64,000 nt of DNA, taken from the NCBI GenBank assembly GCA_013239625.1, contig MU054049.1, forward strand, positions 693,015 through 757,014, read 5' to 3'. Shown one piece after another: positions 20,786 through 55,900 of this stretch; the first letter of the stretch is position 1; each line of letters starts with the position of its first letter. The notes below the pieces were generated by a model. The model was not told the DNA's origin, did not search any database, and worked only from the letters and a program-made list of their open reading frames with translations. Origin of the DNA: Lama guanicoe (Eukaryota). The position numbers were made by a program, and so were the translations under genes.

Positions 20786-21124
20786 CTGTCAGACAGCATA
20801 GACGGGGGCTGCAGAGGAGGGGAGAGCCCACCACCCCCAGACTTCCTGAGACGGCTCGTGTGTTTGCACATGCACGCACTTGCTCGGCCAGCTCTGGGTA
20901 ACGTCGAGAAGCCGGCTGGGTTTTTCCTCCCCTGCCTATCCCTGCCAGGCTGCCCCAGCCTGAACCAGAGCAGAGGTCCAAGCATCCCACGAATCTCTGT
21001 CATCCTGTCTTCACTCAGTTTCTCTTGCTGGCAGTCACTGAACGCCACTTGCCCTTCCAGGGTTAATCACCACCCCCAGCCTGATGTCCCTGCAGCCTGT
21101 CCTTGACCCTGGCTGTCCACTTAC

Positions 21125-21176
21125 CCCTGGGCAGACGCCTGCTCCTCTTCAGATGCCTGGCGAGGCAGAAAGGCAT
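21125..21176 (-). CDS. ARHGAP22: ARHGAP22 alternative first coding exon: MPFCLARHLKRSRRLPR(G)
   Basis: ACC-ATG at 21176, 52 nt open, consensus donor GGG|GTAAGT (21124-21119), phase 1 matches exon at 14191. Resembles my recollection of the N-terminus of a short human isoform. Confidence 0.8.
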
Positions 21177-22329
21177 GGTGTAAGAAGTGGTGGGGCCGTG
21201 GCGGCAGGAGCGGCAGCCAAGCTCGGCAGGGCCAGGGACAGATGCCAGGTGCACGCGGGCTGGCAGTTTGGGTTTGTTCGTGTGGCTGGAGGCAGAGGCT
21301 GCAGCCTCTGGGCTGTCTGTGCTCTGCCAGTGGGCGGAGGGTGGGGGGGTACCAGGCACTTTTTGTCTGCCCTGGGGAACTTCTGTACTTCTCAGTGCCC
21401 CAAAGCCGGGACTATCCTGGGCGGAGCGGGGCGAGGAGGAACAGCTGGGTTCCTGCGGGGCCCTCCAGCTGGTGCTGGTGCACCATCTGCCCTGGTTTCC
21501 TACAACGGAAATCCCTGGGCAGGTCCCAAGCACTGACCACCTTGCACATGCCAGCTTGCATTCTAGGACTGAGAGCACATGGAGTGCCACCCGGCTGCCT
21601 TTGGGTCCATCCCTTGCCCCAGCATGCGAGGAGCTGAGAGCATAGGGCTAGACCCCTGGCTCCATCAGCTTTGTGTCTCTGGGTCCTCCTCTCCAAGTGG
21701 AGATTCAGGGAGCCTTCCTCAGTGGGTTGGTGGAGACTAAACGAATACGTAGGAGAAAGCTGATGCAACGTTAAGTGCTTACTGGCCACCTACTCTTTTT
21801 ACGTTTCCGTCTCTTCATCAGCAAAATGAGGCCAATAACTGGACCTACCTCTTGAGGTTCTGGTGAGGGTTGAATGAAACAAGGATGCCAGAAGCTGGGC
21901 ATGGCACCTGTCCGTGCTTCCTACGTGCCATCTGTAGTGACCATCATCCCTATGTCACTGCAGGGCAGCTGGAACTCCAGAAGCTTCCAGTGGCCCAGGG
22001 CCACCCGGCTAGGAAATGGCACAGCAGGATTTGGATTTAGCAGTTTGGGGTTCTTTCCACAAAATCAGCTGCTACCCTTATGGTGCACCCCCTGATCCTC
22101 GGGATAAAGAGCCCGAGACAGCCCCCTTGCCCAGCCTGGCTGCCTCTCCGGTATCACTCACTCCTCCCAGCGCACAGTGTCAGGAGCCTGGACCACAGGC
22201 AGCTCCGGAACTGTTTACCTGCCTTCCTTTAGATGGAGCCTTCCTCAGCACGGATGTACCCAAAGCCAATGCTCTGTTTAGTGCAGACGCACTGGCCGCG
22301 TCCCCACCAAAGTCAGTGACAATACAAGC

Positions 22330-23590
22330 ATGTCCAACATCACCACTGTTATTTAACATTTCCTGGAAGTATGTGCCAGTGCAATTAGATTAGAAAGAAA
22401 ACATAAAACTATAAAAGCTGGAGGGGAGGGCCTGGTCTTATTACTATTTGTGGTTATTATTTATTTGTGTGGAGAACCTAAGTCAATAAACTGAAAATCC
22501 ATCGCAAGCAATGAGAGAATTTGGTACAGCAGCCAGATACAAAATTAATACACAGAAACCACAATCCGTTTATAAATTAGAAGAGACAGAAATGCATATC
22601 ATCTGTCATAAGTAGGAAAACTCAAACAGAGATGCCAATTTCCCCAATTTAGTCCATAAATCAGCACAATAAAATACAATCGTATTTCTTTTTAAATTAG
22701 GCAAGTTGAGTCTAAAATTCTTAAGTAAAAATAGCAAATGCATTTTTGTAAAAAAAAAAAAAAAGAATAGTGAAATCAGACCAGCCCTAGCAATTACTAA
22801 AACAGAGTGAAATATACAGCTGCGATAATTAAAGCAACGCAGTACTGCGCAACATGAAAACAGACTCAAACACATTTGGGAGCTTGGAATAGAATTAGGA
22901 AGTTATTTCAAAGGGGCCGATACAAGATGGATTCTTCAGTAAATGGCATAGGAACAACTGAACAGCCACCTAGAGCAAAATTATCAAGTTGGAAACTTAT
23001 ACCCCATCTTACAACAAATAAAAAAAATCATGATGGTTCAGAGATTTAAAGATAAAAAAATGAAATCACAGAAGTACCAAGATCCATCGTGGGAGAAATT
23101 TTGTTTAATCTCGAAGTGGGAAAGGTCTTTCTAATACGACTCCAAAACCAGAGACCACAAAAGAGAATCTCACTACAGGAAAGTTAAAAACATTTGCAAG
23201 GCAAAGAAAAGACAGTGAAAAGACAAATGACAAAAGGAGAGGGGTATATATTCATCAAATGAGATGCTTTGCAGGTACTAAAAAAAAGGAGGATGCAGCT
23301 TATGCTCAGAATGTCCTCTGCTAGATACTGTTAAATGAAAAAGCCAAGGGCGGAGTAACATGCTACCATTTTTGCAAACAAAGGGAGGGAGGAAGGAAAA
23401 ACAGAAATATTCCTGTTTGTGCAAAATACCTCTGGAAGGAGACAAAGACATTGGGAGCAGCAGTTCTTTGGGGCGGAAAGTGGACAGATAAAGGAAAAGG
23501 GGGCAGGGAGGCCGGCTTTTGGACTTTTGATATTTGTACCATATTATTTATTTGAAAAAAATAGATGAAAATGGAGTTTAATAGAAAGTG
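22330..23590 (+). mobile_element. Degraded L1ME-like ORF2/3' fragments
   Basis: A-rich; CACCACTGTTATTTAACATT, CAGATACAAAATTAATACACAGAAA and other L1 ORF2-like motifs. Confidence 0.65.
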
Positions 23591-23836
23591 ACAAGTAGGA
23601 AAGAAATCTCACATCCCCTGTGGGCTGCAAGCTGTGCACAGTGGAGGATGGCGGTGGATGGTGGGCACGCTGGCACGTGGGGGTCCCTCAGAGCTGGGTG
23701 ACCAGCTGACCGAGGGGTGTGGGGCTCACAGCTGGAGGACTGACCCGAGGGGGACCGGTGAGGAAAGGGGACAGAGCCTTACCAACCTGGTAATAAAGAT
23801 TTTTGCACCACTTCTTTGTGCAACATAATTTGACAA

Positions 23837-24370
23837 TAGAGTGGTCTTCCCTTATCCGTGGGGGACACATCCCAAGACCCCCAGCGGATGCCCCAAACTG
23901 CAGATAGTACCAACCCCTGTATGTCTGATATTTCTCCTGTACATATATACATGCCTGTGATTAAGTGTAATTTATAAATTAGGCATATTAAGAAATTAAC
24001 AATAACTAGTAATAAGATAGAACAGTTATAAAAATATCCTGTAGTAAAAGTTATGTGACTGGGACACCTTGACAGTCGATTGGATAACCACGAGGGCTGC
24101 TCAGTGACTAAGGGGCCGGCAGCATATTCTGTGTGGATCTGCTGGACCAAAGGGTGACTAACCCCTCCGTGGGACACAGCAAGACAGCATGAGACTTCAG
24201 CACGCTACTCAGAACGGCGTGGATTGTTCTAAAGCTGATGTCTTGTTTATTTCTGGAATTTTCCATTTAACATATTTTCAGACCACAGTTGACCGCAGGT
24301 AACTGAAACCACAGAGACCGAAACCACCACGGAAAGCCAAACCATGGATCAGGGTGGGGGCACTACTGTA
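23837..24370. mobile_element. MER44-like (Tigger7-derived) TcMar element
   Basis: CCCTTATCCGTGGGGGACACATCCCAAGACCCCCAGCGGATGCC...GTTGACCGCAGGTAACTGAAACC...ACTACTGTA. Confidence 0.8.
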
Positions 24371-24508
24371 TCTCTCAGAATTTTAAATGACTCAGCCATC
24401 CTCCCTAGGGGATTTACCCTTCAGATAAATTTGCACATGTGCATAATTAGGAGGCAGTGAGAATAACAGGGAACAACTTAACCGTCCATCAAGTTAAATA
24501 AATAATGT

Positions 24509-24645
24509 CGTTTTGCTCTTTTGGTGGGGGGAGGGAGGAAGTAATTAGGTTTATTTATTAATTTTTTAATGGAGGTACTGGGGAGTGAACCCAGGACCTC
24601 GTGCATGCTAAGCATGTGCTTTACCACTGAGCTATACCCTCCCCC
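24509..24645 (-). mobile_element. Camelid-type tRNA-derived SINE with 14-bp TSD
   Basis: SINE body; TSD TAAATAAATAATGT at 24495-24508 and 24646-24659. Confidence 0.92.
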
Positions 24646-26299
24646 TAAATAAATAATGTGCTGGTTCAGTAAACGATGTCCATTCAAATAAAAGGTGGTG
24701 GTGGAACTATGTGATACGGAGTGATGTATTATTATGTGGAGAAAGCAAAATACCGCGTGAAGCACATGCTTCCATTTGTATAAGAGGGGCAAGGACACAC
24801 CGGGGTGCCTATTTCTGAAAGGACAAGCAGGACCCGGGGACCCGGGCTTGCTTCAGGGGAGGAGGTGAGGGGCTCAGGACACGAGGCTTGCTTTTCCATA
24901 GGCCCTTTGAAGTGTTTGCGTATGTTATCACAGGCACAGAGCGCTTTCTTGAATAAAAATTGTTTCTTTTCCTTGTTAAGAGAGGTGGTGGCCCCTGGGT
25001 TTGGCCCTGCAGAACTCAGACCTGCCCTGTGCTTTGAGTACTTTTCGTTTAGGAAAATGTCTCAAATGTCCTGCAGTCGGTTTGCGGTCCAAGTTCCCCT
25101 TTGGCCAGCCTAGCCCCACAGCAGTTTCATTTCTCCAAACCAGCATCTCCCTGGGAAATCTTCTTTTGTGGTTCTGGGGATGTTTGCATTTTTAGGGAAT
25201 CCGTGCAGCACCCCATGGGAAAACTGGGGCTGTGATTTTTCTCACAGGGACAATTGCAGAAGTGAAGGAAGGGGCCAGCTGGGGAAGGCTCAGGCCTGGC
25301 CAGAGGGTCCCCTCTGAAGCACAAGGCCGGGCTCTCCCTTCCCTGGCAAGAATTCCACACAACAGCCCCTCTCCTCTGCCTTCAGGACACGTGCCCGCTC
25401 ACTGCTTCCCACTGGGGCTCCTTTTGATTGGCTGAGGGGACCGTTTCAGCCCCACCAGCTAGTCTCCATAGTGGACCCCCTAGGTACTCTGCCCTACTTC
25501 TTGTGCCCAAGATATACCACGTACTTCATGCCTTATTGTCTTTGCACATGCTGTTCCCTTTTCTTGGGATCCCTTCCCCCTTGTGTCCACCTGGAAAACT
25601 CCTACCCATTCATCAAGACCCAGCTCAAATATCCACTTCTCCATCACCTTCCCTAACTGTTCCCCCCTCACCCGCTCCCAGTTTTCCTTCTCCCACTCTC
25701 CCCTCCACAAAAGGTGTTTTGAAGGTCTATCATGTGCCACACACTGAGCCATGAGCTGAGGACACAGCAGTGACAAAACCATGAGTCCCTGCCTCTTGGA
25801 GAAGGCAGCCAAGCTGGGGAGACAGGCTTGAACCATTATCACAGATGCAAAACCACCGTGGGGAGCAAGAGCTAGGGTGGATTCCTGAGGCGGGGTCAGG
25901 GTGGGGGTCAGGGTAGGGGTAGGGGTGGGGTGGGACAGCCTCCCACCCACAGCTCTGCCCACCTGGCTCTGGGCCTGGCCTGACTCGGCCCCCTGCTGTC
26001 TCCTGACCTGCCCGAGAAGCCAGGCCTTAGCAGTAACATGGCACTGCCCAGACTGGAAAACATCACTAACTGTTAGGGCAGTGCCCGCCCACCCCTCACC
26101 TCCATTTTAAAATAACTTTTGTGCAGGAAAAAAAATAAGTTAAAAATAGCAACATATGGAAATGGAACATGCCAGTTTCAGATGAAGAGCTGGTTCTGAA
26201 CTGTTCCAGGGTGGGGAGGGTTGTGGTGGAGGAGGGGTGGGCCTGGCACTTGGAGGTGAGGGGAAAATATGTGATTTATGCTCAGGGACCTGGAAGGAA

Positions 26300-26430
26300 T
26301 GATTATATTACATTATAAAATACTATATTAGCAAATTTATAAAATATTATATAAATCACAGAATATAAGTTATAAAAATAAAAAAATGAAATTTAAAATA
26401 TATATTATATTATAAAAATGGAAAATAAAG
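26300..26430. repeat. AT-rich low-complexity tract
   Basis: Almost only A/T (TATTATATAAA-type units) in a GC-rich neighbourhood. Confidence 0.7.
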
Positions 26431-29400
26431 GAACATTCATTGCCCTAAGAAAGGAAAAGGGAACATTTATGAAGTTCGACTTCCTTACATTCCTTGTACA
26501 CCATTGGACTCAACCCCTCCTATGAATGTGCGCAGGGATATTTATTTCTACCATGTTACAAGCAACGTCAGCTGCAGAGGTAACAAGGGCCCCCAGCTGC
26601 AGCTTTACTGGTCCTGCCGCCCCCACACTGCTTGCAAAGGCGGGCACCCCTCCAAGCGACTCCAGGAAGTCAATGGTCTGATCGTATTACCACCCCTACT
26701 ATGTGCAGGAGAAGCTGGGGCCAGTGGGTGGGTTTCCCAAGCCCTAGGAATCTAGCAAGTGATGGAAGCTTGATTTGCACTGAAGACCCACCCCAGTCTC
26801 CTCCCAGCCCCAGGTTCCCACCCTCCTGGATCTCCCCTTCAAGGCTTCTTGCACCTCTCCTGACCCCTAACGGAGGGCTTCGTCCAGGTGGGCGCTTCGG
26901 CATTTGTTAAACGAATGACTAAAGCACCAGTGGGCTGGCAGGAGCTGTTATTAACTGCGGGGGCCTGGCGCCTTTCCCTACCTCACGTTGCTGCTGAGAA
27001 CGTGTCCCCTAATACCACGTGGTGTCTTAGCCTGGGTTCCCCCGAACCAAAGCCAGAGACCGGGCTTGGGAAGCAGGGCAGGGAACGGAACAGGGAAGCT
27101 GGGACAGCCCACAGGGACACCGGATCCAGCTGGCTGCTGTTTGGGAGCCTGGGGCCTCCACCCTGGTGGTATGGTCAGTGCAGCCTTCCAAAGGGTGTAT
27201 CAGAATTGCCAGCCTGGGGACAAAGGGGGAGAGGTACCGATGGGCTCCAGTCAAGTGCGGTCCCGGGGGCTTTAACTTCCCTCTCCCCATCCCCCAACCC
27301 CTCTTCCCCTGACCCCCCCCCATCTTTCTTTCCTCTACCCCCCTTCCCCTTCCTTCCCTGCAGGTTTGACCAGTGCAGGAGACTTCAGGCAGGCTGGGCC
27401 TGGTCTAGCCTGCATGTGTAGGGAGCCTCTTTCTTTCAGTGAAGCAACAGATACTCCTCAAGACCCTACTGTGTGCATGGCATGCAGGGGAGGGGTAGAG
27501 GGGGTGCCTAAGTAAAGAGGACAAGCAAGGCCCTGCCCTCCTGGAGCTTACTCTTTGGGAAAATGGACAAAGGATGAGGGAGCAAATCAGGGAAGGAGGG
27601 AGCTCAGATGGGGCGACTGCAGCCGAGATGGGGTGGGGTTGCCCATATTGGAAAGGCCTGTCTGAGGGGTCCTTGAGTTGAGAACTAAGTGACTAGAGGG
27701 GCCGGTCCAGGCACAGAGGGTTGGGGGATGGGCAGCAAGTGCAAAGGCCCTGAGGTGGGAAAGGCCCTGAGGTCCTTGGTGTATCTCAATGCCCCCAGTG
27801 GGGCATAAGTGGGTCCAGAGGCAGCTAGGAGATTCTGGCAGGTGTCTGGTGGGGAGAAGCAGTGGCGTGGGTGAAGGCGTGACGATCGCCCGGGTTCAGG
27901 ATGTCTTGGTCTCGGTGGTGATCCAGAGGAAGTGTTAGCACAAAGGTCAGCCTCTGGGGCTCCAAGCCTCTGCCCCTCCCCCACCGGCCCTGGGACATAA
28001 GTGGAGCCAAGGCAGGCATGGTACCCAGTGCCGGTGGGAGAAGGGGGTGTCCTGAGTCCCACCATATCTAGCTCACTGTCTCCAGAAACTGCACATTTTA
28101 GACTAAATTTAGAAAATAAATAAAAATCACTTTGTGACTGTAAGCATCAATTATAAAAATGCCAGTGGCATCCCCTCCCACCCCCCTCACAGCTGATTCC
28201 CACCTCAGGCTCAAGCCCAGCTGCTTGAAAAGCACAGCCCCCAGGATGCTGCTCTGACTCCCTTTTCCTCGCTATTGGCTCCCTGTGCCCAAGCCCCGCA
28301 GTCTGGCATCATGGGGGAAGGCCCGGGCCACGGGGCAGGGGCTGACCATCATCCAAGGTCCCGGATTAGAGCCCTATCATTGACACCAGCCCGTGCCTAC
28401 ATCGCCACCTCTCCCTCTACCGGGAGGACGTTCTTGTTTGTTCCCCGGTGCTGGATGCCGCCCTCCTGGACAAGGGCTTCAGAACCGCTGCCCGGAAGGA
28501 CATTCTACAGTCCTCTCATCACACAACCCACCAGGCACCGGGCTGGGGACGGGGGACACAGAGATGAAGCCCTGGTCCTCAGGGAGCCAGGGGCAAGCAG
28601 GTCAGCCATAGACTGGAAGCAGCCCAAGACGCCAAATTAGCAACAGGAAGGAAGGCTGCCCTTTCCTTCGGGGAGGATGTACTGCCTCTCTACTCTTTCT
28701 TATGGAGATGGAGGTAAGCCCCTTCCCCAGTTCTGCATCACAAAACCTCCCCATCACAGGAACTCTTCCTAGTGGGGGGAAACCCCGATGGCGGCCGGGA
28801 GAGGTGGGGGAAGGGGGTTCATACCGTTTCCGCCTCCCCCGGGGGTGAGTTCAGACCCCCTCCCTGAGGCCAGGTGGCGGCAGTCTCCGCAGAACCTGGC
28901 TGGAGTAGGGGGGCTAAATGAAGAGACTGGGGCTGGGGAAAGTGACCTGCCAAGCAGGGGTTAAGTGACCAGGGCCTAGGGGACTCCAAGCCCATGATCT
29001 ACCCACCCAGTACTGTGCACTCAATCCAGCCGCCTCTGTTCCTTTCTGCCTCCACTAGCCGGCCCCGCGGAGCCACAAAATCTATGCTGGGCACATGAGA
29101 AATTCCTTAATTCGAGGTGGACCCCATGGATCTCTTTCTGATGCTCTTTTCTTCTTTGCATGGTTTCCCCGCATGTGGGCCCACCTCCAGCAGGTGTGTG
29201 AGACCTCAGGGCTCACCCTCTTCTTAAACCAAATTCTTCAGGATTTTTTAAAAAACAATATACTATTTTTATAAATGGCCTCCTTCCTGGATGCCAGGTA
29301 TAAACAACCAGACAAGAAGTCCTGCCAGGGCCAGGATGGAGGTTTAATCTGTTCACTGTTACTCAGCACCACTCCCCAGCACAACTCCAGGAGGCAGCCA

Positions 29401-32400
29401 TTCACATGGTAGTAGAAGTTCCTGGAACCTTCTCGGGGCAGCCATTTAATAATACAGTTTTAATAAATGGCACCCCAGTGGCTGACATTCACACTGTGGT
29501 TTAAGTGCCTTCCCACCTCCTTCCCTGGGGCAGCCATTCTCATTGTAGTCTAAAATGATTGGCGCCCTCTGGAGGCCCCACTCCACACTGCAGCTTCTGT
29601 GAATCCCTCCCCAGCTGGAGTTAACATGGTGGCCTCCATGTTTCCACATTTAAGCCTCAAAGCAACCTTAAGGAAGGTCTTATCTTTCAGCATCTTACAG
29701 AAGAAAACTACCTCAAACTCCCAGCCTGAGGTCAGAGCTGAGATTTTACGCTTCATCTATTTGTTGTCCAGTGCTTTTCCCTTCAGCAGAACTGGCAGGG
29801 CTGGGGAGCAAAACCTCAACCATCCAGCCTCTCCGGGCCTCCTGCCTAACCCAGTCCCACAGCAACCCCCAAACTAGACCTTGTGAATCCCATTTTCCTG
29901 ATGGGGAAACTGAGGCATGAAAATGCCGAGTCTCTTGCCAGAAGTCCTGCAGTCAGTGAGTGACCTGGGCCTGCCTGTCTCAGAGAGGGCCTGCTTCCCA
30001 GGGCTGCCCTGCCTTCCACCAGGATGGTCAGAATCCAGTCCAACTGCCAGGGCTCAAATGCGGGGGTGGCCACCGTCCATACTGAGGTGGGTGTTGTCCT
30101 TTACATGGTGTGCTTCGAGGACCCCCAAACCATCCCTGGGGTGTCAGTCTCTCACCTGACCCTCACTCCAAACAGATCTGCCCTGCCAGGCAGGCCCTCG
30201 TCAAGGGTCACACCCCATGCTGGCTTGTGTAACTGATCACAGGGTGGCCCAGTGTCCCTTGTGAACAGCTGTTAGTAGACACTCCTCAGAGACCTGCAGA
30301 GGACATTTAAAAACCCACCACTGGGGCCTGGCTGGCACAGCTGCTCAAAGAGGGAGCTGCTGGCCTGGCTGCCAAGCCTTTCAGGGCAGCGAGGTCTCCC
30401 TCCAGCCACTCTCAGACACACAGGAAGGCCCACTGCAGGCCCTTCGCCTCGGGCACAGGCTAGGACAGCTAAGCTGCCTCCTTTTGGAGGAATGTCTGAC
30501 TTTCTGTACAACACATGGTGCCATTGGGGGAAAAGAGAAAAACTGAAAAGTCATCAAACACTATGAACAGATGGACCGCACCTGGGGCTCGAGCCACACC
30601 TGGAGGGGCCACAGGAAGGTCTGGCCAGAACATCACTGCCTGGCCGGCAGCTGCGTGAGGGAGGGCCTGGAGGTTAAGTGTAGGGGACACAGCACACGGT
30701 CCCGTTGGCACGGTAAAGGCTCTGAGAGGTCCACCGGCAGAGAAAATCCTCAACTCCACTCAGTTCCGCTCAGCTTCTCCCAGGGACTGTGAAACGCATT
30801 GCCAATGGCAACGCCTGTTAACCTCCTAAGAGGCCCCAAGAATGCGTGTTCCTGAGAAGATGCTGCGGGCGCTGCTGAGGTGGGGAAGAGAAAGGGCACT
30901 ACTGTGCCACATGTCGTGATGGAACAGCATGGACACAGAGGGAGGAAAGGTGCCAGAGCCCTGCCTTCTGCATGCAAACGGCTTCATCCCTGTGGGTCCC
31001 TCCCTGATGCCCCTCCCTCATCTTTGCTCCTGTCCATCCACCCAACTGTCTGTCCGTGAGCAAGCCTGGGTGTGGCCTGATGACGGGCTGGACTAGACCT
31101 GGCCTCCTGGGGAAAGGCTACCGTGAACCGCACAGTCTCATTTACAGAGAGCCGAGTGCCCTCTTGCACTCCCGCCGCCGGCCAGCCTGGCCCAGGATGC
31201 GCTGCAGGCCAGCGTGGGGGACCAGAGCCCATGCCATGCCGGGCCCCACGGGGCCTCGGCTGCCCGGGAGCACCCAGGACGGGGAGAACCCCAGCTCCCC
31301 GCCCGTCAGTCGGGTGGAGGGACGCCCTCCAGCTGAGGCCAGATCGGGATGCCCAGCACAGCAGAGCTTTGTTTCAGCCTCCACCATCCATCGCCGCACA
31401 GACGCTCCCTGAATGGCACTGTTGTGGTATTTTAAGAAGATTCTACAAATAGCACTAACTCAGAATGGGCCTCAGAGCCAGCGCATGAATGCTGCAGGCG
31501 AGGGCGGGCCAGCCTGGGAGCTCGAGCCAGGACAAAGGGGCCTCACAGGGGAGGCAGGGCAGGATGCTGGGTGACCCGGGCCTTTTCCGGGGCTCCATGG
31601 CCTCATTTCCCCCAGACTCACCCAGCGGCACCCCCTCCTCCATTGCCCGGTCCTGGTCAGTGGCTTCTCGGGAGTTTGTTGGGAAAGAGCAATTCCCCAG
31701 CCCCTCTGAATAAAGAAAGGGGCTGCAGCATCCTTTCGGCGCCTGCTTCTCCCAGATTTCCAGGGATTTCACGCACTGATGGTGTCCTGCGGGTCATGGA
31801 GGAGGGGGGCACAGGAAGGAAGGATGTCCTCAGGTTTTCATGAGAAATCACTTTATTACGTAGCCAGAGACCCACAGTCCTAGCAGCCAAAGACCTTTAA
31901 CTAGAATCTTTCCAGAAGAGTCCATTCTTGAGACTTGAAAGACAGCTGAGGGAAGAAACAGCCTGGATTTTGGGGTCATTCAGACCTGACCGGCGACATT
32001 TGGGTGGCCAGGGGCAAACTATTTATCTCTCAGCCTCGATATCTTCATCTCCAAAGCCCACAGTATCCAACGACCCTGGCGGGGAAGGTTGAGGAGTGGG
32101 AGGCAGCGCATGCGCTGTGCTTGGCACCGACAGAGCTCAGCAAACTCAGCCTCTCCTCCCTCCCAGATGAAAGACCGTGTATTTAACGCCATGCATAAAA
32201 CGTTTCTAAACTTGGTGGAGAAACCTGGCAGGCATCAAGGGAACCCCTCTTGACCCTGTGAATCCACAAAAACATCGGGGTTATGGAGTTAACGCAAATG
32301 AGCAAGGCAGGACGGTCGAGGGGGCCCGGGCCTGGGGCAGAGTAGAGACTTAAGGTGACATAAGCCTGTTGTGTCCCGTCTGGTACTTGGAAATGTTGAG

Positions 32401-35209: not shown

Positions 35210-35579
35210 TATAGAGCATTGTCATTATGTGACCTGACTCACTCTGTGGAAAAACCCTATCTGCAGGACATTGTCCAAAAAAAATCAGTGGTAATTCATT
35301 AACATTTCTGCTGCCTTAAACTGTGACACTAATTGGGCCAAATAAGCTCTGGACAAAGGGAAGATCTGGGGATGGAGAAATCTTCTGGGGGCTCTGAACA
35401 GCTCTGATATATTTCTGGAGATCTACAAGGCCGTGTACATGTGTAGAGCTGTGCCAGTGAACAGGAAAGACTAGAGAGGTCTCCACCTCTCACTTCCGGC
35501 TGACTTTGAGTCCCAGTACAAGTAGGAAGTGAAGATTAAGTCACAGTCATGAATTACCTAAGCATTGAAGGTGTGTCCC

Positions 35580-35612
<33 letters not shown>

Positions 35613-38600
35613 AGCAAAGGGTAGCAGACTTATTGGTTAGAGGCACTTAGTGATATCTCTGAAAAATCATTATCTGACCACTAAACAAATCAAGAAGAGA
35701 CTTCAATGGCTGTGTACTACAGATTTTATAAATTTAGTCCAGGAAAGTCACTAAATAAACAGCTACACCAGTAATAACAACAAAAGCAGGGGAAGAAAGG
35801 GAATCTGATTTGCAGAGGTGCCACACTGTATTATGTACAATGTCCACCTTTCAAGAAAAGACTACAAGATACACAAAGAAAGAAGAAAGTATGGCCCATA
35901 CACAAGGGGGGGAAAAAGCAGTCAGTAGAAACCACCCTTGGCCCAGATGTTAGACTTACAAGACAAAGATTTAAAATCAGTTATTATAAATATGTTCAAA
36001 GAAACCATGTCTAAAGAATTAAAGGCAGATATGACTGATATCTCACCAGATAAAGAATATCAATGAAGGGATAGAAATTATAAAAAGAACCAAACAGAAA
36101 TTCTGGAGTTTAATAGTACAGTAACTACAATGAAAAATTCACTATAGCGAATTAAGAGCAGATTTGAGCTGGCAGAAGAAAGAATCAGTAAACCTGAAGA
36201 TAGGTCAACTGAGATTATCCAATATGAAGAGAAAATAGAAAGAAAGAAAAAAAAGAATGAAGAAAAATGAACAGAGTCTTAGAAACCAGTGAGACATCAT
36301 GAAGTGTACCAACATACGTATAATGGGAGTCCTAGAAGGAACGGAAAAAAGCAGGTAGAAAGACTATTTGAAGAAGTAATGGTTGAAAGCTTCCCAAATC
36401 TGTTGAAAACCATTATACATCCAAGAATCTCAATGAACTCCAAATATGATAAACTAAAAGAGATTCATATCCAGACATATCACAGTCAAGCTGTTTAAAG
36501 ACAGAGAATCTTGAAAGAAGCAAAATGATTCATCACATACAAAGTGTGTATAACACTCACTATATAAAACAGTTAACTTCTCATAAAAAAAAAAAAAGGA
36601 AACCAGAAGGTGGTGGGATGACATTGTCCAAATGCTGAAAGAAAAAAAGACTGTCAACCAAGAATTCTATACCCAGAAAAACCATTTTCAAAAACGAAGG
36701 AGAAATTAAAACTTTGCCAGATAAAGAAAATCTGAGAAAATTCAGTTATCTGTCCTATCAGATCAGTACTATAAGAAACTCTAAAGGGAGTCCTTCAGAA
36801 GAAATGAAAGAACATTAGATGATCACTTGGGTCTACAAGAAGAAATTAAAAACACCAAAAAAGATAACTATAGTTAAATATAAAAAACAGTATAAATATA
36901 TTTTTTCTAGCTCTTTTCTTCTATCTGGTTTAAGAGACAACTACATGGAGCAACAAAACTGTGTTAATGGACTTCTAATGCATTAAGATGTAATTATTAT
37001 GGCAATAATGGCATAAAGTGGGGAGAGGGAACAGAGCTCTATTGGAGCAAAGTCTCTGAACACTATTGAAACTAAGGTAGTATTAATCTGCACTGCATTA
37101 AAAGGCTAATTGTAATCCCCAGAACAAACACTAAGATGGTAACTTTAAAAATACTGTAAAGAAACATAAGGAAATTAAAATGGCAAAGTGAAAAATCACA
37201 TAAAAAGGTGGTGGCAGTGAAAGACTAGGACTAAAAAGACATGAGTCATACAGAAAGTAAGCAGCAAAATGGCTGGCATAAATCTACATTACCAGTAATT
37301 ACACTAAATGTAAGTGTATGAAATATTCCAATAATAAAGGCAAAGGCTGACAGAATGGATTTAAAAAACAAACTATATGCCGTCCACAGGAAACACATTT
37401 AGATTTTAAAATACAAATGAATTGAAAGTGAAATAATGGAAAAAGACATACCATGTAAACAATACCCCAAAGAGAGCTAAAGTGGACCAAATATCGAACA
37501 AAACAGACCTTAAGATAAAAATGTTACTGGACACAAACAAAAAGATTTTATAATGAAAAGAGGGTTGATCCAGCATGAATATCTAACAATTGTAAACTGC
37601 CCTTACATAGAGTTCCATAGCTCACGAAGTAAAATTAGAATTGAAGTGAGATTCAACAATTATAGTTGGAGATGTCAGTACTCTGCTTTCAATAATTGAA
37701 CAGCTAGGCAGGAAATCAATGAGGAAACAGAACACTTGAACAACACAATGAACCAAGGAGGTCTAACTTACAGGACATCTCACCCAGCGAGAGTGGAATA
37801 CACACTCTTCACAAGTGCACATGGAATGTTCTCTAGTATAGACCATAAGCTGGATCCTAAAGCAAATCTTAAATATTTAAAAGGATTGAATAAAACCAAA
37901 TATGAAAGTGTATTCACTGACTATAGAGGAATGAAATCAGAAATCAACAGGAAAAGGAAATTTGGAGAATTCATAAATATGTGGAAATTTAACAATCCAC
38001 TCTTACATAACTGAAGAAGAGATCACCACAGTTTTAAGAACATTTTGAGATGAATGGAAATGAAAACACAACATGTCAAAACTTATGGGATGCAGCGTGC
38101 TTAGAAGGAAATCTATAGCTGTAAATGTCCACATTATAAAAGAAGAAAGATGTCAAAGCAATAACCTAATCTTATACCTTAAGAAACTAGAGAAAGAACA
38201 AGCCAAGCCCAAATCAAACAGATGGAAGAAAATAATGAAGATTGGAGGGGAGAAAAGTTAAATAAAGACTAGAAAAACAATAGAGAAAACCAATAAAAAC
38301 AAAAGCTTTGGTTCTTTCAAAAGATTACCACATTTGACAAAATTTAGCTAGACTGACCAAGAAAAAAGAGAAGACTTAAATTACCAAAATCAGGAATGAA
38401 AGAGGGGACATCACTGCCAACCTTGCAAAGATCAAAAGGATTACAAGGGAATAATATGAACAACATTATGCCGAAATTAGATGACTTAGATGTGGAAGAA
38501 AAATTCCTAGGAAGGCATACAGTACCAAAACTGACTCAAGAAGAAACAGAAAACTCTAAGTAAACATTTAACAAGAGATCAAGATAATAACTTAAGCATT

Positions 38601-39250
38601 TCTAACAATGCTTCACTAATAAATTCTACCAATCATTTAAAGAATTAGTATCAGACAGGTGAATTTTACAAACATTTAAAATATAATATCAATTATTCAC
38701 AAATTCTTCCAAAAAGTAGAAGAGAAGGGAATGGTTCCCAGTGGTTCCCAGCCAGTATTCCTCTGCTAACAAAAACAAAGACATTGCAAAGAAACTACAG
38801 GCCAACATCCCTTATGAATACAGACAAAATATTAGTAAGTCCTCAACAAAATACTAGTAAAATGCAATCCAAATGCTTATCATTTGATGAATGGACAAAC
38901 AAAATGTGACATATTCATACCATGGACTATACACAGCCATAAAAAGGAACGAAGTAGTGGTAACACGCTACAACGTGGATGAACCTTGAGAACATTATGC
39001 TAAGTTGCTAAAAGACCATATATTGTACAAAGTATGCAGTTTCGGGCTGCAGGTCAAGGCGGGTAGGGTTGTCTCAGGAATAGGAAGTGACTACTAAGGG
39101 CATCAAGTTTCTCTTTGGGGTAATAAACACGTCCTAAGATGAGATTATGGTGATGGTTGCATAACTCTAAATATATTAAAAACTATGCTGCTGCAAAATC
39201 TACATGGATGGAGTCTATGATATGTGAAATACATCTCAAAAAAAAAAAAC
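35210..39250 (+). mobile_element. Old L1M element: 5' region, ORF1, ORF2 endonuclease, internal deletion, 3' end
   Basis: ORF 37736-38014 (YRTSHPARVEYTLFTSAHGMFSSIDHKL) resembles the L1 endonuclease; ORF1-like 35940-36830; L1 3' end from ~38870; poly(A) at ~39238-39249. Confidence 0.85.
35579..35610. repeat. (CA)n microsatellite
   Basis: About 15 CA units. Confidence 0.95.
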
Positions 39251-40399
39251 CGTTTAAAAGAGTCTGGTGATGGGCGTTTAGGGGCAGAGCCCAGCAGAAG
39301 GTGTAATTCTGGATGTGTATTAGCTATAAAGCTGAGGCAGGTAGGTTAAAGGGAACTATTGGAATTCACTTCACTTGGATGCACCCCACTGGGGCCCAGG
39401 CTTCCTGAAGGAGCATCCCCTTATTGTGCAAGGACCTGCAGACTAAGAAGATGAGAAAACACACATCAGGCAATTTCCTTGCCCTCTCCCTCCGGGAGTT
39501 CAGGACTCCTCGGCTCTCTGGGAGGCTTGCTGTCCTAAAGGCCAAGGTCAGGGACTTCAGGCTCCCCCAGGACTGGCTCCTCTTTGGTGCGGACCGTGGC
39601 TATGTGCTGCTTAAACAGACCTGCTCAGAAACTTGGTCCGCTGACCTCTCCTCACAGTGTCACACCCTCCCCCAGATGAGTGCTGGCTGAGCCCCTCTCT
39701 GAGCAGGTGGGAAAAGGCATTTGGCCTCCAGATGCCCCGTGGCTAGGGGCACATAGCAGTTCTGAGTTTCCTCAAAAACCTGTCTAAGGTTCAAGCTGAC
39801 AGGGATCTTGGAGACCAACCAGTCTTGCCTGCTTCCCTCTTCACAGATGAGGAGAGGAAACTGAGGCTCTGAGTGGTAACCCAGCCAGAAAGGAGCAGTG
39901 TTAGGACGAACACCTGGCCTCCGCCAACCCTGGAGGTCGGCATAGCTGTCCCCATTTATAACTGGGGGTGCAGAGGCTCAGAGAGGGGTCCCCTGGCTAG
40001 CAAATGAAACCAAATCCTCTTCCTGAGGCTGGTTCCCATTTTTGCAAAACCCAGAGGACTTCTGCCCCAGGGCATGAGAATGGGGAAGAGGTAAACAAAA
40101 AGGGACACTTCCCAGAAACCAAGTGTGACCCCTGCAAACCCTGATCTATGGAGACCTCAGGGCTCGGGGCCCCAAACACAATCCCTGGAGCAAGAGGCTC
40201 CAACATTCTGACACATCCTTCCAGCCACATCACTGTCTTTGAGGTCGAGTCAGACCTAAGTGCTCCCACGCCGCCTGGCTTCTGCCAGCCTTCCCAGTGG
40301 ACAGCAAGAGACAGAGCCTGCCCTGCCTTCAGGGAGCTTCTGGCTCAACGTGGCAAGGGGACAGATTTTCTGAACTGACACTCTGTTGTGATGGGTGTA

Positions 40400-40950
40400 A
40401 GGGAAAAGTACAGGACGGCAAGTGAGCAAGTAACCGGGGTCAGGGAAGGCCCCTCAGGAAAGACAAATGCTTAGGGCCAAACATTGGGGTCCGCAGGTCA
40501 AGAGCAGGGGAAGGTGACTTCAGATAGACAGAAGAGCATGGGTGATGCCAGAGTGGGGAGAGGTCTCGGGACACTGAGGGAAGTGAAAGCAGGCCAGCTG
40601 TGAGCGGATGCTGGTGAGTGCAGGGGTGCTGGTGACCATACCGGCCTCCTGTGAACGGCGCTAAGAGTTCACTGTGGACGCCGCTGGAGGCCCTGAGGAT
40701 TTCCGAGCAAGGAGTGATGGGACCTTGGCAGAGTCACTGGCTGCAGGTGGAGGATGCACTGGATCGGGGGAGGGTCTAAGAGGACAGAGCCATCGGGAGG
40801 CCACTGCAGTGGCAGGCGGGGGGCTGGGACCTGGGAGCTGGCATGGATGGAGGCAAGCAGAGGGATTCAGGTGCATTTTGGAAATGGAACTGGGGGGACC
40901 TGGCAACGGCGAATCACAGAAGGATGAAATTGAGAGTTCCGATTTAGCTT
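40400..40950 (-). mobile_element. Degraded L2 (antisense)
   Basis: GGGGTCAGGGAAGGCCCCTC...GGATTCAGGTGCATTTTGGAAATGGAAC antisense L2 motifs. Confidence 0.5.
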
Positions 40951-43900
40951 GATTAACTTTGGCTGCTCTAGTCCAACGGAGGTGTCAAGCGGGTCTGGTG
41001 CTTAGGGCGAGGCCTGGCCTGGGGAAATCACTGTGACTAAAGGAGCTGCCAGCAAGAGGGCTGAGCAGTGGGGGCAGAAGTGAGCCGAAGGAGCATGTGC
41101 TTGTGCAGGTCCCTGGGGGCAGCGGCAGAGAAGGAGCAGCTGGGGAGCCGAGGCCCTGTGGAAAGCCCTGCCTTATTTTCTCTGTGGGTTGACTGCTCCT
41201 CCTATGAGACCCAGCTCAGGCACCCACTGCTCTGGGCATCCCCTGAGCCAAGCCCTTCTAGAGCCTCCAGGCTCATCACTCCCTGTCTGTCTTCTCAGCT
41301 TGCAGCTTGGCCGACTGTTTCCGGGGCCTCTACTTGGCCAGGCTGCGGGCACACTGGGGGCAAACACTGCACCCTCCCTGACTCTTTGTCCTCATGCCCA
41401 GCCCGAGGCCTGGCGTGGAGTGGCCAGCGAATGATTGTTAAATGGACAGCCCAAAGCCTGGATGGTGGCTGCCTATTAGCAATCTTGGAAGATTTTGTGA
41501 AAAACGGAATTTTCTCAAGAAAGTGGGCTCAGAGGCTGTATCAACTGTTTACACAGGAGAACCAGACCTCTCACCCCTGACTCTGGGATGGCCAAGTGAG
41601 GGGCACCTCTCTGCCCAGCAGCAGTGTTCCTGCCCGGCCCACTGGCCTCTGCACCCTGGCTACCAGGCACCCCGACCAGCCCTTCGCCCATCAGGAAAGG
41701 GACAAGGAGTCTGGGTCCAGTGCCTCATGCTGTCACTCAAAGTGATACACCCAGTGGGGCTGGACTCTCCCAAGTGGGCTGCCCTGGGATTCCCCGGGTG
41801 CCAGGAGCCACGAGCAGGTGAAGGTGAGCGCAACTTTCCCCCTGCCCTCTTGCCAGATTCTCTTTGGAGTGTCGTGCCAGACCACAGGGGTGACAATATG
41901 ACCGCCAGTTACAGGAGACAGACCCTCCCCAACCAGGCACCGGAGAGAATGAAATGAACCGAGGGCAGCAGGCCAGGGTCTCAGAGATGGCTCCAGGCGT
42001 GGGCCACCTTCCCGGGGCTTGGCCCCTTCTCAGGCCCAACTGAAGGCACCGTGAGAGGGTGTGGTGTGTGCAGGGGCCAGAGAGGCCCAGGCGGGGTGGA
42101 GGGGGGAGGTCAGGAGGGGGTGCTGGAGACGGTGTCAGGTAACGCCAGCAAGGTTAAGAAGCTGGGCCTTCATCTGCAGGCCCTGTGGGGCCAAGATGGG
42201 GTTTGAGAGGGACACAGGGTGACAGGAGCCACGCATGGGATGCTGGCCTGGGCTGTGGGCTAGAAGCAGCAGGGATGAACTTGGGATGACTGGTCAGGAA
42301 AGCCAGCGCAGTCAAGAGGATGAGGGTCTCCACAGGGATTGCAGTGACCTTAGGGGCAGGGATGGGGACACTGCCCTAGGCAGGATCTCAGGAGCTGTCA
42401 GCCTTTGGTTATGGGGAATGAAGCACGGGGCAGAGCTGAGAGCCTGGAAGCTGGGAGAAGGGACGGGAGGGAGTGCTGGACTCCAGCTGGAGTTCTGGAT
42501 TTGCAGGCTGGAGGGGGGCACTGCAGAGGTGGGAGGCAGAGGATTTGGGGGCTGTTTCCTTAGAGGTGATCACAATAATGCCCAGGGAGGCAGGCAGGGC
42601 TGGGCAGGGGCTGTCGCGGGGGAGGAAGGTGGGCGGCTCTCAGGTGCTCAGAGCACCGGGATGGTTCACCAGGTCCAGCACCGGCACGGGTGTCAGGGAC
42701 AAGGGTAGGAGGAGCAGAAGGGGGATGCAGGGACCAGCAGACTGCTCCTGGGGGCTGATGATGGAGGGAAGGAGACGTGGGCTACGCTTGTGGCATGTAC
42801 AAGGGTAAGAGATGGGTTTAAAAAAAATGTTCTGATGAATGACTGAGGCAGGTTTGTGGGCTGAGAGAAGGAGCCAGTGGAAGGGAGGGTGAGGGTGCTG
42901 GGGCCAGTCAGGACATGACAGGGGACAAGATCCCGGAAGACAGGAGGGCTCCCAGTGCTGAGACCAACCGGAAGCATGAGGGGCAAAGAGTGGCAGCAGG
43001 GGGCCAGTGCACCTCAGAGGTCTCAGGGACCCTCAATCTGCCCTTGCCCCCTCCCTGGCCTAGAACAAAAGCTGCCTTGGTGCTGCCCTCCTGTACGACT
43101 TCTTCCTCCAAGTCTCAGCCTTGGGCCACGATGCAAAGTTGAAGCAAATGAAATCTGCCACTGAACAGACCCACCACAGAGCTCAACATAGCAGAAGCAC
43201 CTGGAAACATCTCCCAGAAACAACGAAATCAGACAGTGTCCTCAGAGTTCAGAGCAAGTCCGCGAGGGTGTAATCCTTCTCTGCACATCAGAGCCCCCTC
43301 GCTGACCTTTTGACTTCTGCAGAAGCCCCCGGGACCCAGGATGGCTCCATTTGTAACAATCTGTCTCGCATATAATAGTAAATGTGATTAATATCACAGC
43401 ATATCACGCCCCACAACGCACCTGGAGCAATCCCTCCCCAGGTCCAGGCTGCCCACCTGCAGCTCCACCACTAGCAGGAGAGCAAGTGTCCCCTGGAGAG
43501 AGAGCCAGGCTTTGGATTTTAAAGTCATGTTGATTAGATCCCCTATGGTGACTCCAGCACGTGCTGTAGTTTTGCTGCTTTCTTCATGGGGTTTATTGTT
43601 TGAGTTTGCCTGCTTTATCAAGTACACTTTTACCCAGGGATGACATGATCAACTACCCTGTCGTAAAAATTTTGATTCAGAAATATCCAAGAATGAAGTC
43701 AAGAACAACAGCTGTTGTCTTGGGAAAAGTTATACCAATGACTAATGAACTCTCTTTTGATCTTAAATTAAAAAAACACATTTTTCTAAACTGGAAAGTC
43801 AGAAAGCTTCTTCACAGGTACCTTGTAATAGCTAAACACACACCACACACCACACACCACACACCCCAAACTTTATTGCTGCATCACTGCTATGACAACT

Positions 43901-46196
43901 GGGTCACAGTCCAAAGCAGCATTTCTCAAAGTGTGTTCAAAGATGTGCTTGCTGGAAGATGCTCGATGAAAGGCGAGTTGCCAGGGACTGTATCTACCGT
44001 CCACCTGATTTGGAGTTGCACCGATGTGTTGGAAGCTCTGAGAAGTCTTGCAGTGAAAAACTTTCCAAACTTCGATAACTCATCATTTCTAAGTTTATGA
44101 CCAAGGGAAACGTGCCCCCTGCTTGTAGCAGTACCAATTTGGAACAATGGTCCAAACTGTCTCCTGCCTAGCCAGACTGGCCACATGGCTTCAGATGTGT
44201 TAAATGAGGCGACGACATTTAAACATTTGAAGATTTTACATCAAAAACTAAATGTCTGCCTTCCTTGAACTGCAGACCAACCTTCCTGCCTGCCAGTGGC
44301 TGGCTGCCCGCTCTGGACAGGGCAGGCTTACTCTGACACCACAATGCTCCCCAGCCCCTCCTGCTCCAGGCTTGATCAGCTCTGCTAATCTACATGGGCT
44401 TTGGGAATTTGTGGGCCCTTCAGACTGGGTCCCTGTTCACAGGCTGCTGTGGCCAGCTGTGCCTTAGGATGCGTGGCAGGATGGGGGGCAAACTGGGAAA
44501 AATTCCTACACCAGGCCTGGTCATTACCTGGATCGGTATAGCCTGGGGTCCCCAGCCTGGCAGGCGATGACCCCGCCTCCCTTCCAGGCCTGTCAGTTGA
44601 GTCCTCCCTAATCAAGGCCTTGCAAATCCACCCTTACTTCTGGGACTCTGGCTCCAACTCCCTGCAGGGTTTACTGAGAAATGGTCAGGAAAGATGAAAG
44701 CTGCAGCCAGCCCCCAAGTGAAATCCTTCCTGCTCTGCTCTGGGCTCTGGGCTGCCCTCGGCCAGGATGCAGCTGGACCCTACCCTCTGAATCTTATTGT
44801 AGCCCTGGCCACTGTGACAGCCAAGACATGCTGGCCCTCGGTCTCCTCCCTCCAAACATGAAGCCCCACATGCAAAATTCTTTTTTAAATCCAAGCTAGG
44901 AAAACTGTTGCTCTGGAGTAATGAAAACCATGTAACTATTCATATTTGGTTTTAGCTGCAAAAAGACTCAACCATAAACACTATCTTACAGTCAGACTAA
45001 CTCAGTTCTCTTTGCTCTATACGACCTGTTTAAACGTAGGATCCAATTTAGTTGTGTTATGTTTATTACACATGTTATAAGCTACCTCAAACCCTTTGCG
45101 AAACTAACCTGTGTATTTGTGCCATCCTTAACGTCACCTGGACAAGAATCCTTCAAGCTGTTTGACACATTTACACCTTTATCAGACCTTTCCAGGATAT
45201 ACTTTTCAAGGAGCCGGAGCCTGGCGCCCATCCTGGTAAAGCCTGGCTGACCATTCGGTTTACAGGCAAGGCTTCCCAGACGCACGTTGTCATAACAGTC
45301 CCTAGTGAAGTCCTTAAACACACAACCTCACAGGCTCTTCCCCAGAGCCTAGCCAGAAAGGTCAGGGTGGGGCCCGGGAATCTGCATGTTTAACAAGAAG
45401 TGGGTGCAGGGCACGTGGGTTTTAGGTTCCGGCGAGTTTAGGGAGCGCTGCAGTAAAGGGTTGTATCACTATGTTTCTGACAATCAACAGGGATCGTTTC
45501 AGGCAGTTAAGGGTTAAACTGGAAGGGCCACGGCCCAAAGGAGGCCGGACCTCAGGCTGCCGCCAACGGCTTCAGCGCGTTTCTCGGCTCGGAGCCCTCT
45601 CCAAGCCCGCCGCATTCCACAAGCAGCTCCCCTTGAGGTTCTGCCACGACTTTTGGAAAACTCTGAGTCGGGGCCCCTGGGTCCAAGTTAGTGACAGAGG
45701 CAGGCGAAGAGAATGAATGGCCCCGCTCCGAGGCGGTTAAGCCGCAGAGGCGGCGCCGGGCGCAGGCCAGGCTCCCTCTGCAGAGGACCTGCGGGCGGGG
45801 CCGGGCGCCGGGGTCTCCGCCGCCCCAACCTTGGACTTGGTGGACCCGCGGCCAGCACTCCCCGTCCGCTCCGGGCCCCGGAGGGCGGGCGCTCCCCTCC
45901 GTTCGGCTCCCCTCCCACCCCGGAGCCGGACCCTAACCCCCATCCGGGCTCCGCGGAGCAAGAGGAGCCCCTGGACGCGCGCGCTGCAAAGTTCGGAGAC
46001 TCTGGGGGAGTTGTAGCCACATCTGAGCCCTTTCCAAGGCGGGGGCAGATGTCGGGTGGCCCAGGGGAACCGGCGACCAGTCCCCGATGCGGGGCTGGCA
46101 GCCCCCAGTGGCGGCTGGAGGGAGCCGGCGGGACGCGCGCCGCGCGGGAGCGCAGAGGTCCCGAGCCTGCGGCGCACGTGCGCGCCCGAGAGTTAC

Positions 46197-46248
46197 CTTT
46201 GGGCGCTCGCAGGTGTCCCCTCCAGTCTTTGCAGCAGCACAGCCCCAT
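46197..46248 (-). CDS. ARHGAP22: ARHGAP22 candidate alternative first coding exon: MGLCCCKDWRGHLRAPK(G)
   Basis: Strong Kozak GCCATGG (ATG 46248-46246) inside a CpG island, 52 nt open, donor AAG|GTAACT (46196-46191), phase 1, in frame with exon at 14191. Confidence 0.72.
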
Positions 46249-46615
46249 GGCAGCGGCCCGCGCCCGCCGCTCGCCTCCAATGCCTGACACACCGCCTGCT
46301 GCCCGTGCCCCCGGAGCGGCGCGGCCAAGGTCTGGCCTCCGGGCAGTGCCCAGCCTGGCGCGGGGCTGCGCGCGTGGCCACCGGCCCGGCCGGTCCCTTC
46401 CCCTCACTCTCCGTCCGGGTCCCGCGCCTCGGGCATCCCGGCCTCCGGGCAGACCCTGCTAATCAATAGGAGAACGCGCAGATCGCGCCGGCCGCGCCGC
46501 CAGCCCGCTTTTATCTCCGCGCGCCGGGGCGGCCCCGCGCCGGCTCCCTGCCCTCGCGGGCGCCCTCCCCGCGGCCCGTTACTCTCCTGGGGCGCCGAGC
46601 TGCGCGCTCGCGACG

Positions 46616-46633
46616 GGCCGCCAGGGGGCGCTG
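46616..46633 (+). promoter_or_regulatory. CTCF binding motif
   Basis: GGCCGCCAGGGGGCGCTG, essentially the CTCF core consensus. Confidence 0.75.
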
Positions 46634-48282
46634 TGCGAGAGGGCGCGGTCTGCGGCTCCCTCCCCTGCCCGCAGGGAGCTGGCTAAGTATGCCGGGCGTT
46701 GATACCAACCCACCGCAGACCAGAAGGAAAGGTCCCCTCGTGGTGCAAGTGCGGCGGCGCCCCTCCCCCAGCATCCTCTAAATAGTTACCTCTTGGGTGA
46801 CTTGGGGAGCGTCTACCAGGGCCACTCTGCTTTCAGTTTCCCAGCTCACCTGCACTCTACAACTGTGAGTTGCCCAGGCTACCCCCAAACCTGGCTGGGC
46901 TACCTATGGACTGTGTGACTTGGGGTAACCCTTCCTCCCTGAGACAACTCTCCTGAAATGTGCGGGAAAGGCCGCTTCAGATGTCATTTAGCACAAATTA
47001 AAGGTTTGATGGTATCAAGTTATTCAAACACTTCGTGCTCAGTTTCCTCATCTATCAGATGGAAAGACTAATAGAACAGCTTCATTGGATCTTTGTGGGG
47101 ATTAAATGAATACATATATATGATTTAGGACACAACTGGCATGTTGCTAAGTGCTTTGTAAGTGTGAACCATCATCATTATCAACTGTTGGTGAGGATTT
47201 GGGCAAATGGACACTTTTGCCAGAAGAGTTTGTTTTGGTGCAATCACTTTGGAAGCTAATGTTCATTTGCTCTGCTTATTAAAACAAAAAAATGCTAATA
47301 CCCTGGGACCAAGCAATTTCATTTCTCAGCATGCACTCAGCCCCAACCCCTAGGAAAACCTCTACTAGGCTTTTCATTGCAGCCTTGTTTGTAACTGCAA
47401 AAATTGAAACCAACAGGATGATCAGCAGTCAAGGGGTCATCAAATACACTGGCATTTTCATAAAACGAAATACTGTATCAAAGGAGGGAGATGCAGCTGA
47501 ATGTTTAAGATCTGTGGATTCATAGCACTGATGTAAAGCACACACCCTAAGAATTATTACTATACTATGTAATACCCACTCTATGCTGGGTACTGCTCTA
47601 GGCACTGGGTCTAGAAAAACACTCGGGAAGAAAAAACAGCAAATCTAGAGTGGTTCCCTCTAGGGAGACGGTGAGTGACAAGAGTGGATTGAAAGTGGGT
47701 GTCGAGGGAATTTAGCGTTCTTATAGTGGTCTAATTTCTTTAAAGGAAGGTATATTTACATGTTATTGTGTAATTAATCTAATGAGAGAAATTATTTCAA
47801 CTATCTGGCAGAGTAGGCTTCTTAATACTAGATTCTCTCTCACCCCTCCAGCTCCTAGGGTCTGTTCCTTCCCCTGAAACGGGGCTGTGGTCAACCTCTG
47901 ATGGCCTTGGCTGGGCTGGCATTTTCTCCTTCCCTTCCAACCCCCATCCCATCTTGAGAACACAGAGGCAGTCGGGAAGAAGAGCAGAGGCGAGGCCAGG
48001 CCAGAGGCAGAGGCTGCCAGCGGCATGGAGAAGAGTTAATGGTGGGGGTGCGGGAGGCAGGGAAAGAGAGGAAAGAATAACTTGGAACAGGGAAGAGGTT
48101 TTCCCAGGAGTTAAGTCTCATTCAAAGAGGAGATTAACACCAGTGGGACAGATTTCTGCCTCCCTCTAACTGTCCAGAAAGACCAGGATGAGGCTTCTTC
48201 AGGGAGAGAGGAGGCTTGTCCTGCACCCGATCCAGCAAGAAAGATATTTTCATTTCATGACATGTAGGCGGGGGTTACAAAA

Positions 48283-55515: not shown

Positions 55516-55829
55516 GCTTACTGGCCTGGCATTTGCGTATCGAAGAGGGCCACTTAAGTGACCCTTCACAGAACAAAGAAGATCAGCCTCTCTCAATTTA
55601 AAAGAAAAGAAAACCCTCCTCGCAGCCGCACATTCTTTCAGTGGAGGCTCCCGCACGGCGGGCTGGACCGGCCGCACTTTGGTCTGACTCATCCGGTGGG
55701 TTGCTCGTTCCCTCTCCAGCATCATTCCTGAGACAGTTATTTCTGGAGCGCCTCTCTGTGCCAGACACGGGAAACCGAAGACCAGAGCCCCCTGTCCGAC
55801 GCCCCTTCTCTGCGTGCGTGCGTGCGTGC

Positions 55830-55860
<31 letters not shown>

Positions 55861-55900
55861 ATGAAGACGCCCGCTCCCCCTCCCTCTCCAAGCCCGTCCT
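55516..55900 (-). promoter_or_regulatory. Candidate promoter / non-coding first exon or enhancer
   Basis: Locally CpG-enriched unique sequence; AP-1 TGACTCA 55685-55691; TEAD CATTCC 55723-55728; donor CCA|GTAAGC (55521-55516); upstream (TGCG)n(TG)n. Confidence 0.45.
55811..55860. repeat. Compound (TGCG)n(TG)n microsatellite, Z-DNA prone
   Basis: 50 bp of uninterrupted purine-pyrimidine alternation. Confidence 0.95.

Follow-up and report, generated by a model that had tools for sequence, protein, structure and literature searches.

Two alternative 17-codon first exons, probably of independent origin, in the ARHGAP22 intron of Lama guanicoe

The window analysed here, the whole 64,000-nucleotide (nt) stretch at positions 693,015 to 757,014 of contig MU054049.1 of Lama guanicoe, appears to fall in the large intron of the Rac-inactivating gene ARHGAP22 that precedes, on the minus strand, the last exon of its PH domain. 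Two internal promoters would lie in this intron, each with its own first exon, called A and B below. Judged by their occurrence in database proteins, both are known, publicly annotated alternative first exons of ARHGAP22. Either one would be spliced from its own promoter to the acceptor at position 14191, giving a RhoGAP protein of about 610-635 residues; such a product is seen for A in camel and is expected for B from other mammals. Of the PH domain it would retain no more than the C-terminal 42 residues, so that a working PH domain would be lacking. Within this alternative-promoter reading we consider it probable that A and B arose independently of each other, although they have the same coding length and resemble each other in several positions. 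The features concerned, in window coordinates, are the following.

46248-46197, minus strand: coding part of alternative first exon A of ARHGAP22; 17 codons + 1 nt, MGLCCC start, donor AAG/GTAACT.

21176-21125, minus strand: coding part of alternative first exon B; 17 codons + 1 nt, MPFC start, donor GGG/GTAAGT.

14191-14063, minus strand: shared acceptor exon of 129 nt; last strand and C-terminal helix of the ARHGAP22 PH domain, phase 1 in and out.

14062-14015, minus strand: optional 48-nt extension of the shared exon; second donor CCAG/GTAA, +16 residues in frame.

45301-47000, no strand: CpG island around exon A; presumed promoter of the short isoform predicted to be acylated.

The initial annotation had presented A and B as twin segments of 52 nt with equal coding length and phase, and the coordinates, the donors and the composition of 17 codons plus one nucleotide were all verified. 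The 52 nt refer to the coding parts, 5′ untranslated regions excluded. Both segments are exactly of this length, end in G and are in frame with exon 14191-14063, whose acceptor (..cag/GT GGA..) completes the split codon, residue 18 being Gly with A as well as with B. The shared exon has a pyrimidine tract and cag ahead of it and GT behind it. It is the sole ARHGAP22-like coding exon found downstream of A and B within the window; matching of Camelus models places both the PH exons further upstream and the exons of the RhoGAP domain beyond it. The equal phase of A and B is not a coincidence, since any first exon that joins the acceptor at 14191 in frame must end in phase 1. An ATG followed by an open frame and a GT is in itself no proof of an exon, because a mechanical search of the minus strand between 14192 and 64000 returned 448 such candidates fitting the acceptor.

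The assignment to ARHGAP22 is based on the shared exon, which is 100% identical to Camelus ARHGAP22 models and which, scored singly against 1.84 billion representatives, gave 98 matches with ARHGAP22 as the best. The N-termini were traced by word searches with full-length database proteins, limited to their N-terminal 40-60 residues and of limited reach. About 60 protein clusters, spread over all eutherian orders, carry the N-terminus of A; among their sources are primates, rodents, pigs, ruminants, whales, carnivores, horses, bats, hedgehog and Camelus ferus. Residues 1-18 of Camelus ferus isoform X5 (P0113) match the window at exon A with 100% identity (tblastn), the first 17 residues of Nannospalax ARHGAP22 (P0006, 541 residues) are those of exon A, and the same N-terminus occurs on a transcript-size Logan contig (P0154, 631 residues on 2424 nt). 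The N-terminus of B was found in 16 distinct eutherian forms (P0164-P0181, P0217-P0223), which have 17 codons in every case and are joined to the same exon. They come from pig, warthog, blue whale, Rousettus, ferret, stoat, otter, walrus, panda and several cats, and from red squirrel, marmot, kangaroo rat, sifaka, capuchin and elephant. As gene models of three eutherian superorders all attach this 17-codon N-terminus to the one exon, we reject the view of B as a mere chance open reading frame. Models from many mammals splice A or B straight onto the exon encoding the PH tail, as camel model P0113 does for A, and this supports the view that a single RhoGAP body is offered with a choice of N-termini, selected by promoter. 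Short isoforms of both types show a RhoGAP Pfam match and no PH match. Many small database proteins (e.g. P0003, P0010, P0257) carry short upstream extensions that were considered as further first exons; these were rejected as read-through of the intron ahead of the acceptor.

The full-length camel isoforms begin with two different far-upstream N-termini, MLPTASS.. (P0214, P0215 and P0182) and MLSPK.. (P0216 and P0233), both encoded beyond the window. Together with exons A and B this makes at least four coding start exons in ARHGAP22. The 48-nt extension of the shared exon is read through in camel models P0113, P0233 and P0216 and is absent from P0215 and P0182; in pig, ferret and marmot, too, these 16 residues make the difference between paired isoforms.

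The two short N-termini suggest different ways of targeting. Exon A encodes Gly2, cysteines at positions 4-6 and Lys7, and the N-myristoylation pattern is present in A of the window, in Camelus, Nannospalax and four frogs, and in a sardine ARHGAP22-like protein; B does not have it. A most likely is an SH4-type lipid anchor, as predicted from this motif, and would supply a myristoyl/palmitoyl membrane attachment in place of the PH domain. Of the proposal that A is dual-acylated, the myristoylation motif and the three adjacent cysteines were thus borne out from frogs to mammals, and the attachment of the lipids themselves stands as a prediction. The B peptide of the window starts with Met followed by Pro2-Phe3 and contains six Lys or Arg, one His and no Asp or Glu, with a basic cluster at residues 10-14. 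Positions 7, 10, 11 and 13 are nearly always basic in the 16 orthologue forms. This cluster most likely would act as an electrostatic membrane-binding or nuclear-import patch, a role predicted from composition and conservation. Cys4 is not conserved; it is replaced by Trp in cats, sifaka (Propithecus) and capuchin (Cebus) and by Ser in Marmota, which makes a palmitoyl role of this cysteine unlikely. The polybasic/cysteine anchor that had been proposed for B is therefore retained in its basic half and loses its cysteine half.

The two exons also differ in age and constraint. The short ARHGAP22 isoform of Xenopus, Hymenochirus, Discoglossus and Pelobates shares the first eight or nine residues of A, in an exon of 14-16 codons, and a start of 17 residues with Met-Gly and a cysteine is present in the sardine ARHGAP22-like protein. 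A word search with the Xenopus isoform for non-mammalian forms of A returned frogs only. From these sequences, A is older than the frog-mammal split, and its length of 17 codons is a later state in view of the shorter frog exons. B extends from Afrotheria to Laurasiatheria and is much less constrained than A, with 65% identity on average between orthologues across Eutheria. It was not found outside Eutheria among 135 matches, which is weak evidence given the limited reach of the word search. Position 14 is variable in both families. The camelid codon for this residue of B is CGT; other species have His, Cys, Leu, Gln or Ser here, mostly one base change away from CGT, and CpG decay would yield His or Cys. 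The B orthologues that vary at residues 4 and 14 include P0173, P0178, P0219, P0221 and P0220. In Xenopus tropicalis (P0085, P0243), too, the PH-tail exon is preceded by two mini first exons, one with MGLCCC (14 codons) and one that is basic (13 codons). The basic exon of Xenopus shows no likeness to mammalian B (score -9), so that short basic N-termini seem to have evolved on two occasions; this counts for an independent origin of A and B.

The sequence context of the two exons is consistent with separate promoters of different type. In the surroundings of exon A (45700-46699) the GC content is 0.70-0.79 and the CpG observed/expected ratio 0.72-1.0; at exon B this ratio is 0.24-0.46, outside any CpG island. 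The CpG statistics thus agree with the earlier assignment of A to a CpG promoter and of B to a non-CpG promoter, the promoters themselves being presumed. Further CpG islands in ARHGAP22 introns lie at 55301-56000, upstream of A, and at 2301-3500, downstream of the shared exon; these could be further promoters or belong to unrelated transcripts.

The ungapped alignment reported earlier was verified, with identical M1, C4, R14 and P16 and conservative L/F3, K/R7, R/K10 and K/R17. We propose that A and B are of independent origin, that their equal length and positional likeness (Cys4, the basic residues 7, 10 and 17, and Pro16) are most likely a coincidence, and that similar selection for short, basic, cysteine-bearing N-termini perhaps helped. 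Equal length is not an ancient trait, given that B was found in Eutheria only and that the frog form of A has 14-16 codons. The best-conserved positions of B, which are Pro2, Phe3 and Leu9, do not match the invariant positions of A, which are Gly2, Leu3 and Trp9, and this counts for independent origin. Without Met1 the identities number 3 of 16 (19%, p = 0.19), so that the score is due to the kind of residues shared (Cys, Pro, Arg) and to the mildness of the substitutions. At the nucleotide level 25 of 52 positions are identical (codon-shuffle p = 0.017). Local DNA alignment of A and B with flanks of 300 nt revealed no likeness (score 12 against 13.8 ± 1.7 for shuffled sequences), and the 300-nt upstream and downstream flanks compared separately gave p = 0.72 and 0.47 in dinucleotide shuffles.

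Several results weigh against this view. The same length of 52 nt is found in 12 of the 448 mechanical candidates, so that its agreement would be a coincidence of about 1 in 35 (about 3%). The camelid peptides, Met1 excluded, reach a BLOSUM62 score of 15 with a residue-shuffle p of 0.0024-0.0027, and p = 0.003-0.008 under BLOSUM45, BLOSUM80 and PAM250. Among 985 peptides from ATG-started open reading frames of at least 17 codons in the window, none reaches a score of 15 against A and one does so against B. In whale, pig and elephant the likeness persists, with p = 0.006-0.010 under BLOSUM62 and 0.003-0.014 across matrices. A column shuffle at the level of the families gave a mean pair score of 2.8 compared to -17.4 ± 7.3 (p = 0.008). 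Two further points concern function, as the lipidation of A and the role of the basic cluster of B both enter the explanation as predictions. Two more concern the use of B in this animal: its N-terminus is missing from all Camelus models retrieved, and its transcription here is hinted at by read data in the form of word shares only. In RNA-labelled runs from several studies 0.13-0.48 of 56 sampled words of the segment 20900-21500 were present, compared to about 0.9 in DNA-like runs. These shares fit an expressed part of about 200-300 nt, without showing splicing.

The strongest alternative is that B is a strongly diverged tandem duplicate of the 17-codon exon A, copied within the intron in an ancestral mammal. 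Such a copy would have lost Gly2, two cysteines and the CpG promoter and become basic, while keeping its length, the junction (Pro16, basic residue 17 and the split Gly codon) and Cys4. Alternative exons are known to arise by tandem duplication. In favour of a duplication are the coding length of 17 codons in A and B alike in all eutherians seen, the ungapped likeness (camelid, p = 0.002-0.008 over the four matrices; pig, whale and elephant, p below 0.015) and the family-level shuffle just given. In addition, parsimony makes Cys4, Arg14 and Pro16 ancestral in B. However, the likeness is confined to the protein level, being absent from the DNA of the exons and of 300 nt on each side, and the count of identities other than Met is unremarkable. 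The first nine residues of A have hardly changed since the frog-mammal ancestor, so that almost all divergence would fall on B. With 65% identity among B orthologues across Eutheria compared to 19% between B and A, change would have to have been accelerated several-fold in the stem lineage. The presumed promoters differ in type, and the failure to find B outside Eutheria, together with the 14-16 codons of frog A, excludes equal length as an old inheritance.

Comparison of more species also reduces the weight of the camelid pair. When the 16 B forms are scored against A, values range between 16 and -12 (median 9); felids and Cebus are negative, and the camelid form is second best. Where Cys4 is replaced by Trp (cat, Cebus) the signal is lost (p = 0.08-0.12). 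Since the camelid pair is near the top of the species range, the likeness first noticed in it is in part a selection effect, and this too speaks against duplication. Of the similarity expected in a multi-species comparison, the length of 17 codons is kept in all B forms; Cys4 and the score are not. The initial annotation had offered ancient duplication as one explanation of the twin exons and had cautioned that 17 residues are too short to prove homology. The caution stands, and duplication is unproven in view of a B found only in Eutheria, an A that reaches back to frogs in shorter form, the missing DNA likeness and the median score of 9. Protein likeness and equal length together exceed expectation, and duplication stays alive as an explanation that is less likely than independent origin; we regard it as rather unlikely. 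A shade more doubtful still is its full form, a two-member cassette of homologous 17-codon first exons in which the acylated exon was copied in a stem mammal and rebuilt as a polybasic one under another promoter. If this were true, promoter choice would swap the membrane-targeting mode of a single Rac-GAP, making ARHGAP22 a miniature, functionally diverged variable-first-exon locus. The twin-exon idea adds little unless homology can be demonstrated.

A further possibility is that B is unused in this camelid, being a conserved relic or an artefact passed between gene models, with only A and the far-upstream promoters active. The absence of B from the Camelus models retrieved speaks for this, and so do the camelid-specific Leu5 (Pro elsewhere, Ser in one orthologue), the identity of 10/16 between camelid and elephant B, which is close to weak constraint, and the abundance of mechanical ATG-plus-GT candidates. 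Yet the ATG, the frame, the 17-codon length and the consensus-like donor GTAAGT are all intact, independent pipelines (NCBI models and Ensembl-derived UniRef entries) annotate B across three eutherian superorders, and the word shares of the RNA-labelled runs fit an expressed part, so that we consider an unused B improbable.

The existence of two conserved kinds of PH-less ARHGAP22 isoform, one probably lipid-anchored and the other basic-tailed, matters because ARHGAP22 turns Rac off in cell migration, angiogenesis and synapse function, and its cellular location decides the effect. The two kinds should be considered in the interpretation of knock-outs and of isoform-specific expression studies. 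For a gene trap of mouse Arhgap22, intron 3 is given as the site of the cassette (PMC8639580). By the exon numbering of full-length ARHGAP22, both presumed internal promoters probably lie in this intron, and the short isoforms might not be caught by the trap, depending on where exactly the cassette sits. The acylation motif of A, conserved from frogs to mammals, is cheap to test.

Isoforms of similar architecture are known. The protein p68RacGAP was reportedly first published by Aitsebaomo et al. in 2004. It is described as an endothelial PH-less isoform of ARHGAP22 that enters the nucleus with Vezf1 (PMC4059726; PMC4049857). The products of A and B would belong to this published class, as p68RacGAP resembles them in gene of origin, in combining RhoGAP and coiled coil without a working PH domain, and in size class (about 606-636 residues); this is a likeness of architecture and does not imply a match to either first exon. 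The open-access literature searched made no mention of the acylation motif or of a second basic N-terminus of ARHGAP22, and searches for lipidation of ARHGAP22 and for its N-terminal motif gave nothing relevant. The paralogue ARHGAP24 likewise makes N-terminally truncated isoforms without PH domain, p73RhoGAP or RC-GAP72 (PMC4049857). The homologous exon boundary ahead of the PH tail is kept in the family. No mini first exon like A or B was found for ARHGAP24 or ARHGAP25 among the representatives, in a search that was not exhaustive; their short upstream extensions look like read-through of the intron ahead of the acceptor or like starts within the exon that is shared.

With the dual acylation signals of the SH4 type, as in Src-family kinases and G-alpha-i/o, exon A has in common Met-Gly2, an allowed residue 3, a small residue 6, Lys7 and the cysteines at 4-6. 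The likeness is one of a PROSITE-type motif only and does not involve homology. A parallel in gene organization is provided by the protocadherin alpha/gamma and UGT1A clusters of variable first exons, which were made by tandem duplication. Their first exons are long and plainly homologous and have conserved promoter elements, whereas A and B of ARHGAP22 encode 17 residues each, with marginal likeness in protein and none in DNA, and have presumed promoters of unlike type. What these loci share with the ARHGAP22 intron is the use of several first exons, each with its own promoter (a presumed one in ARHGAP22), in front of one constant acceptor.

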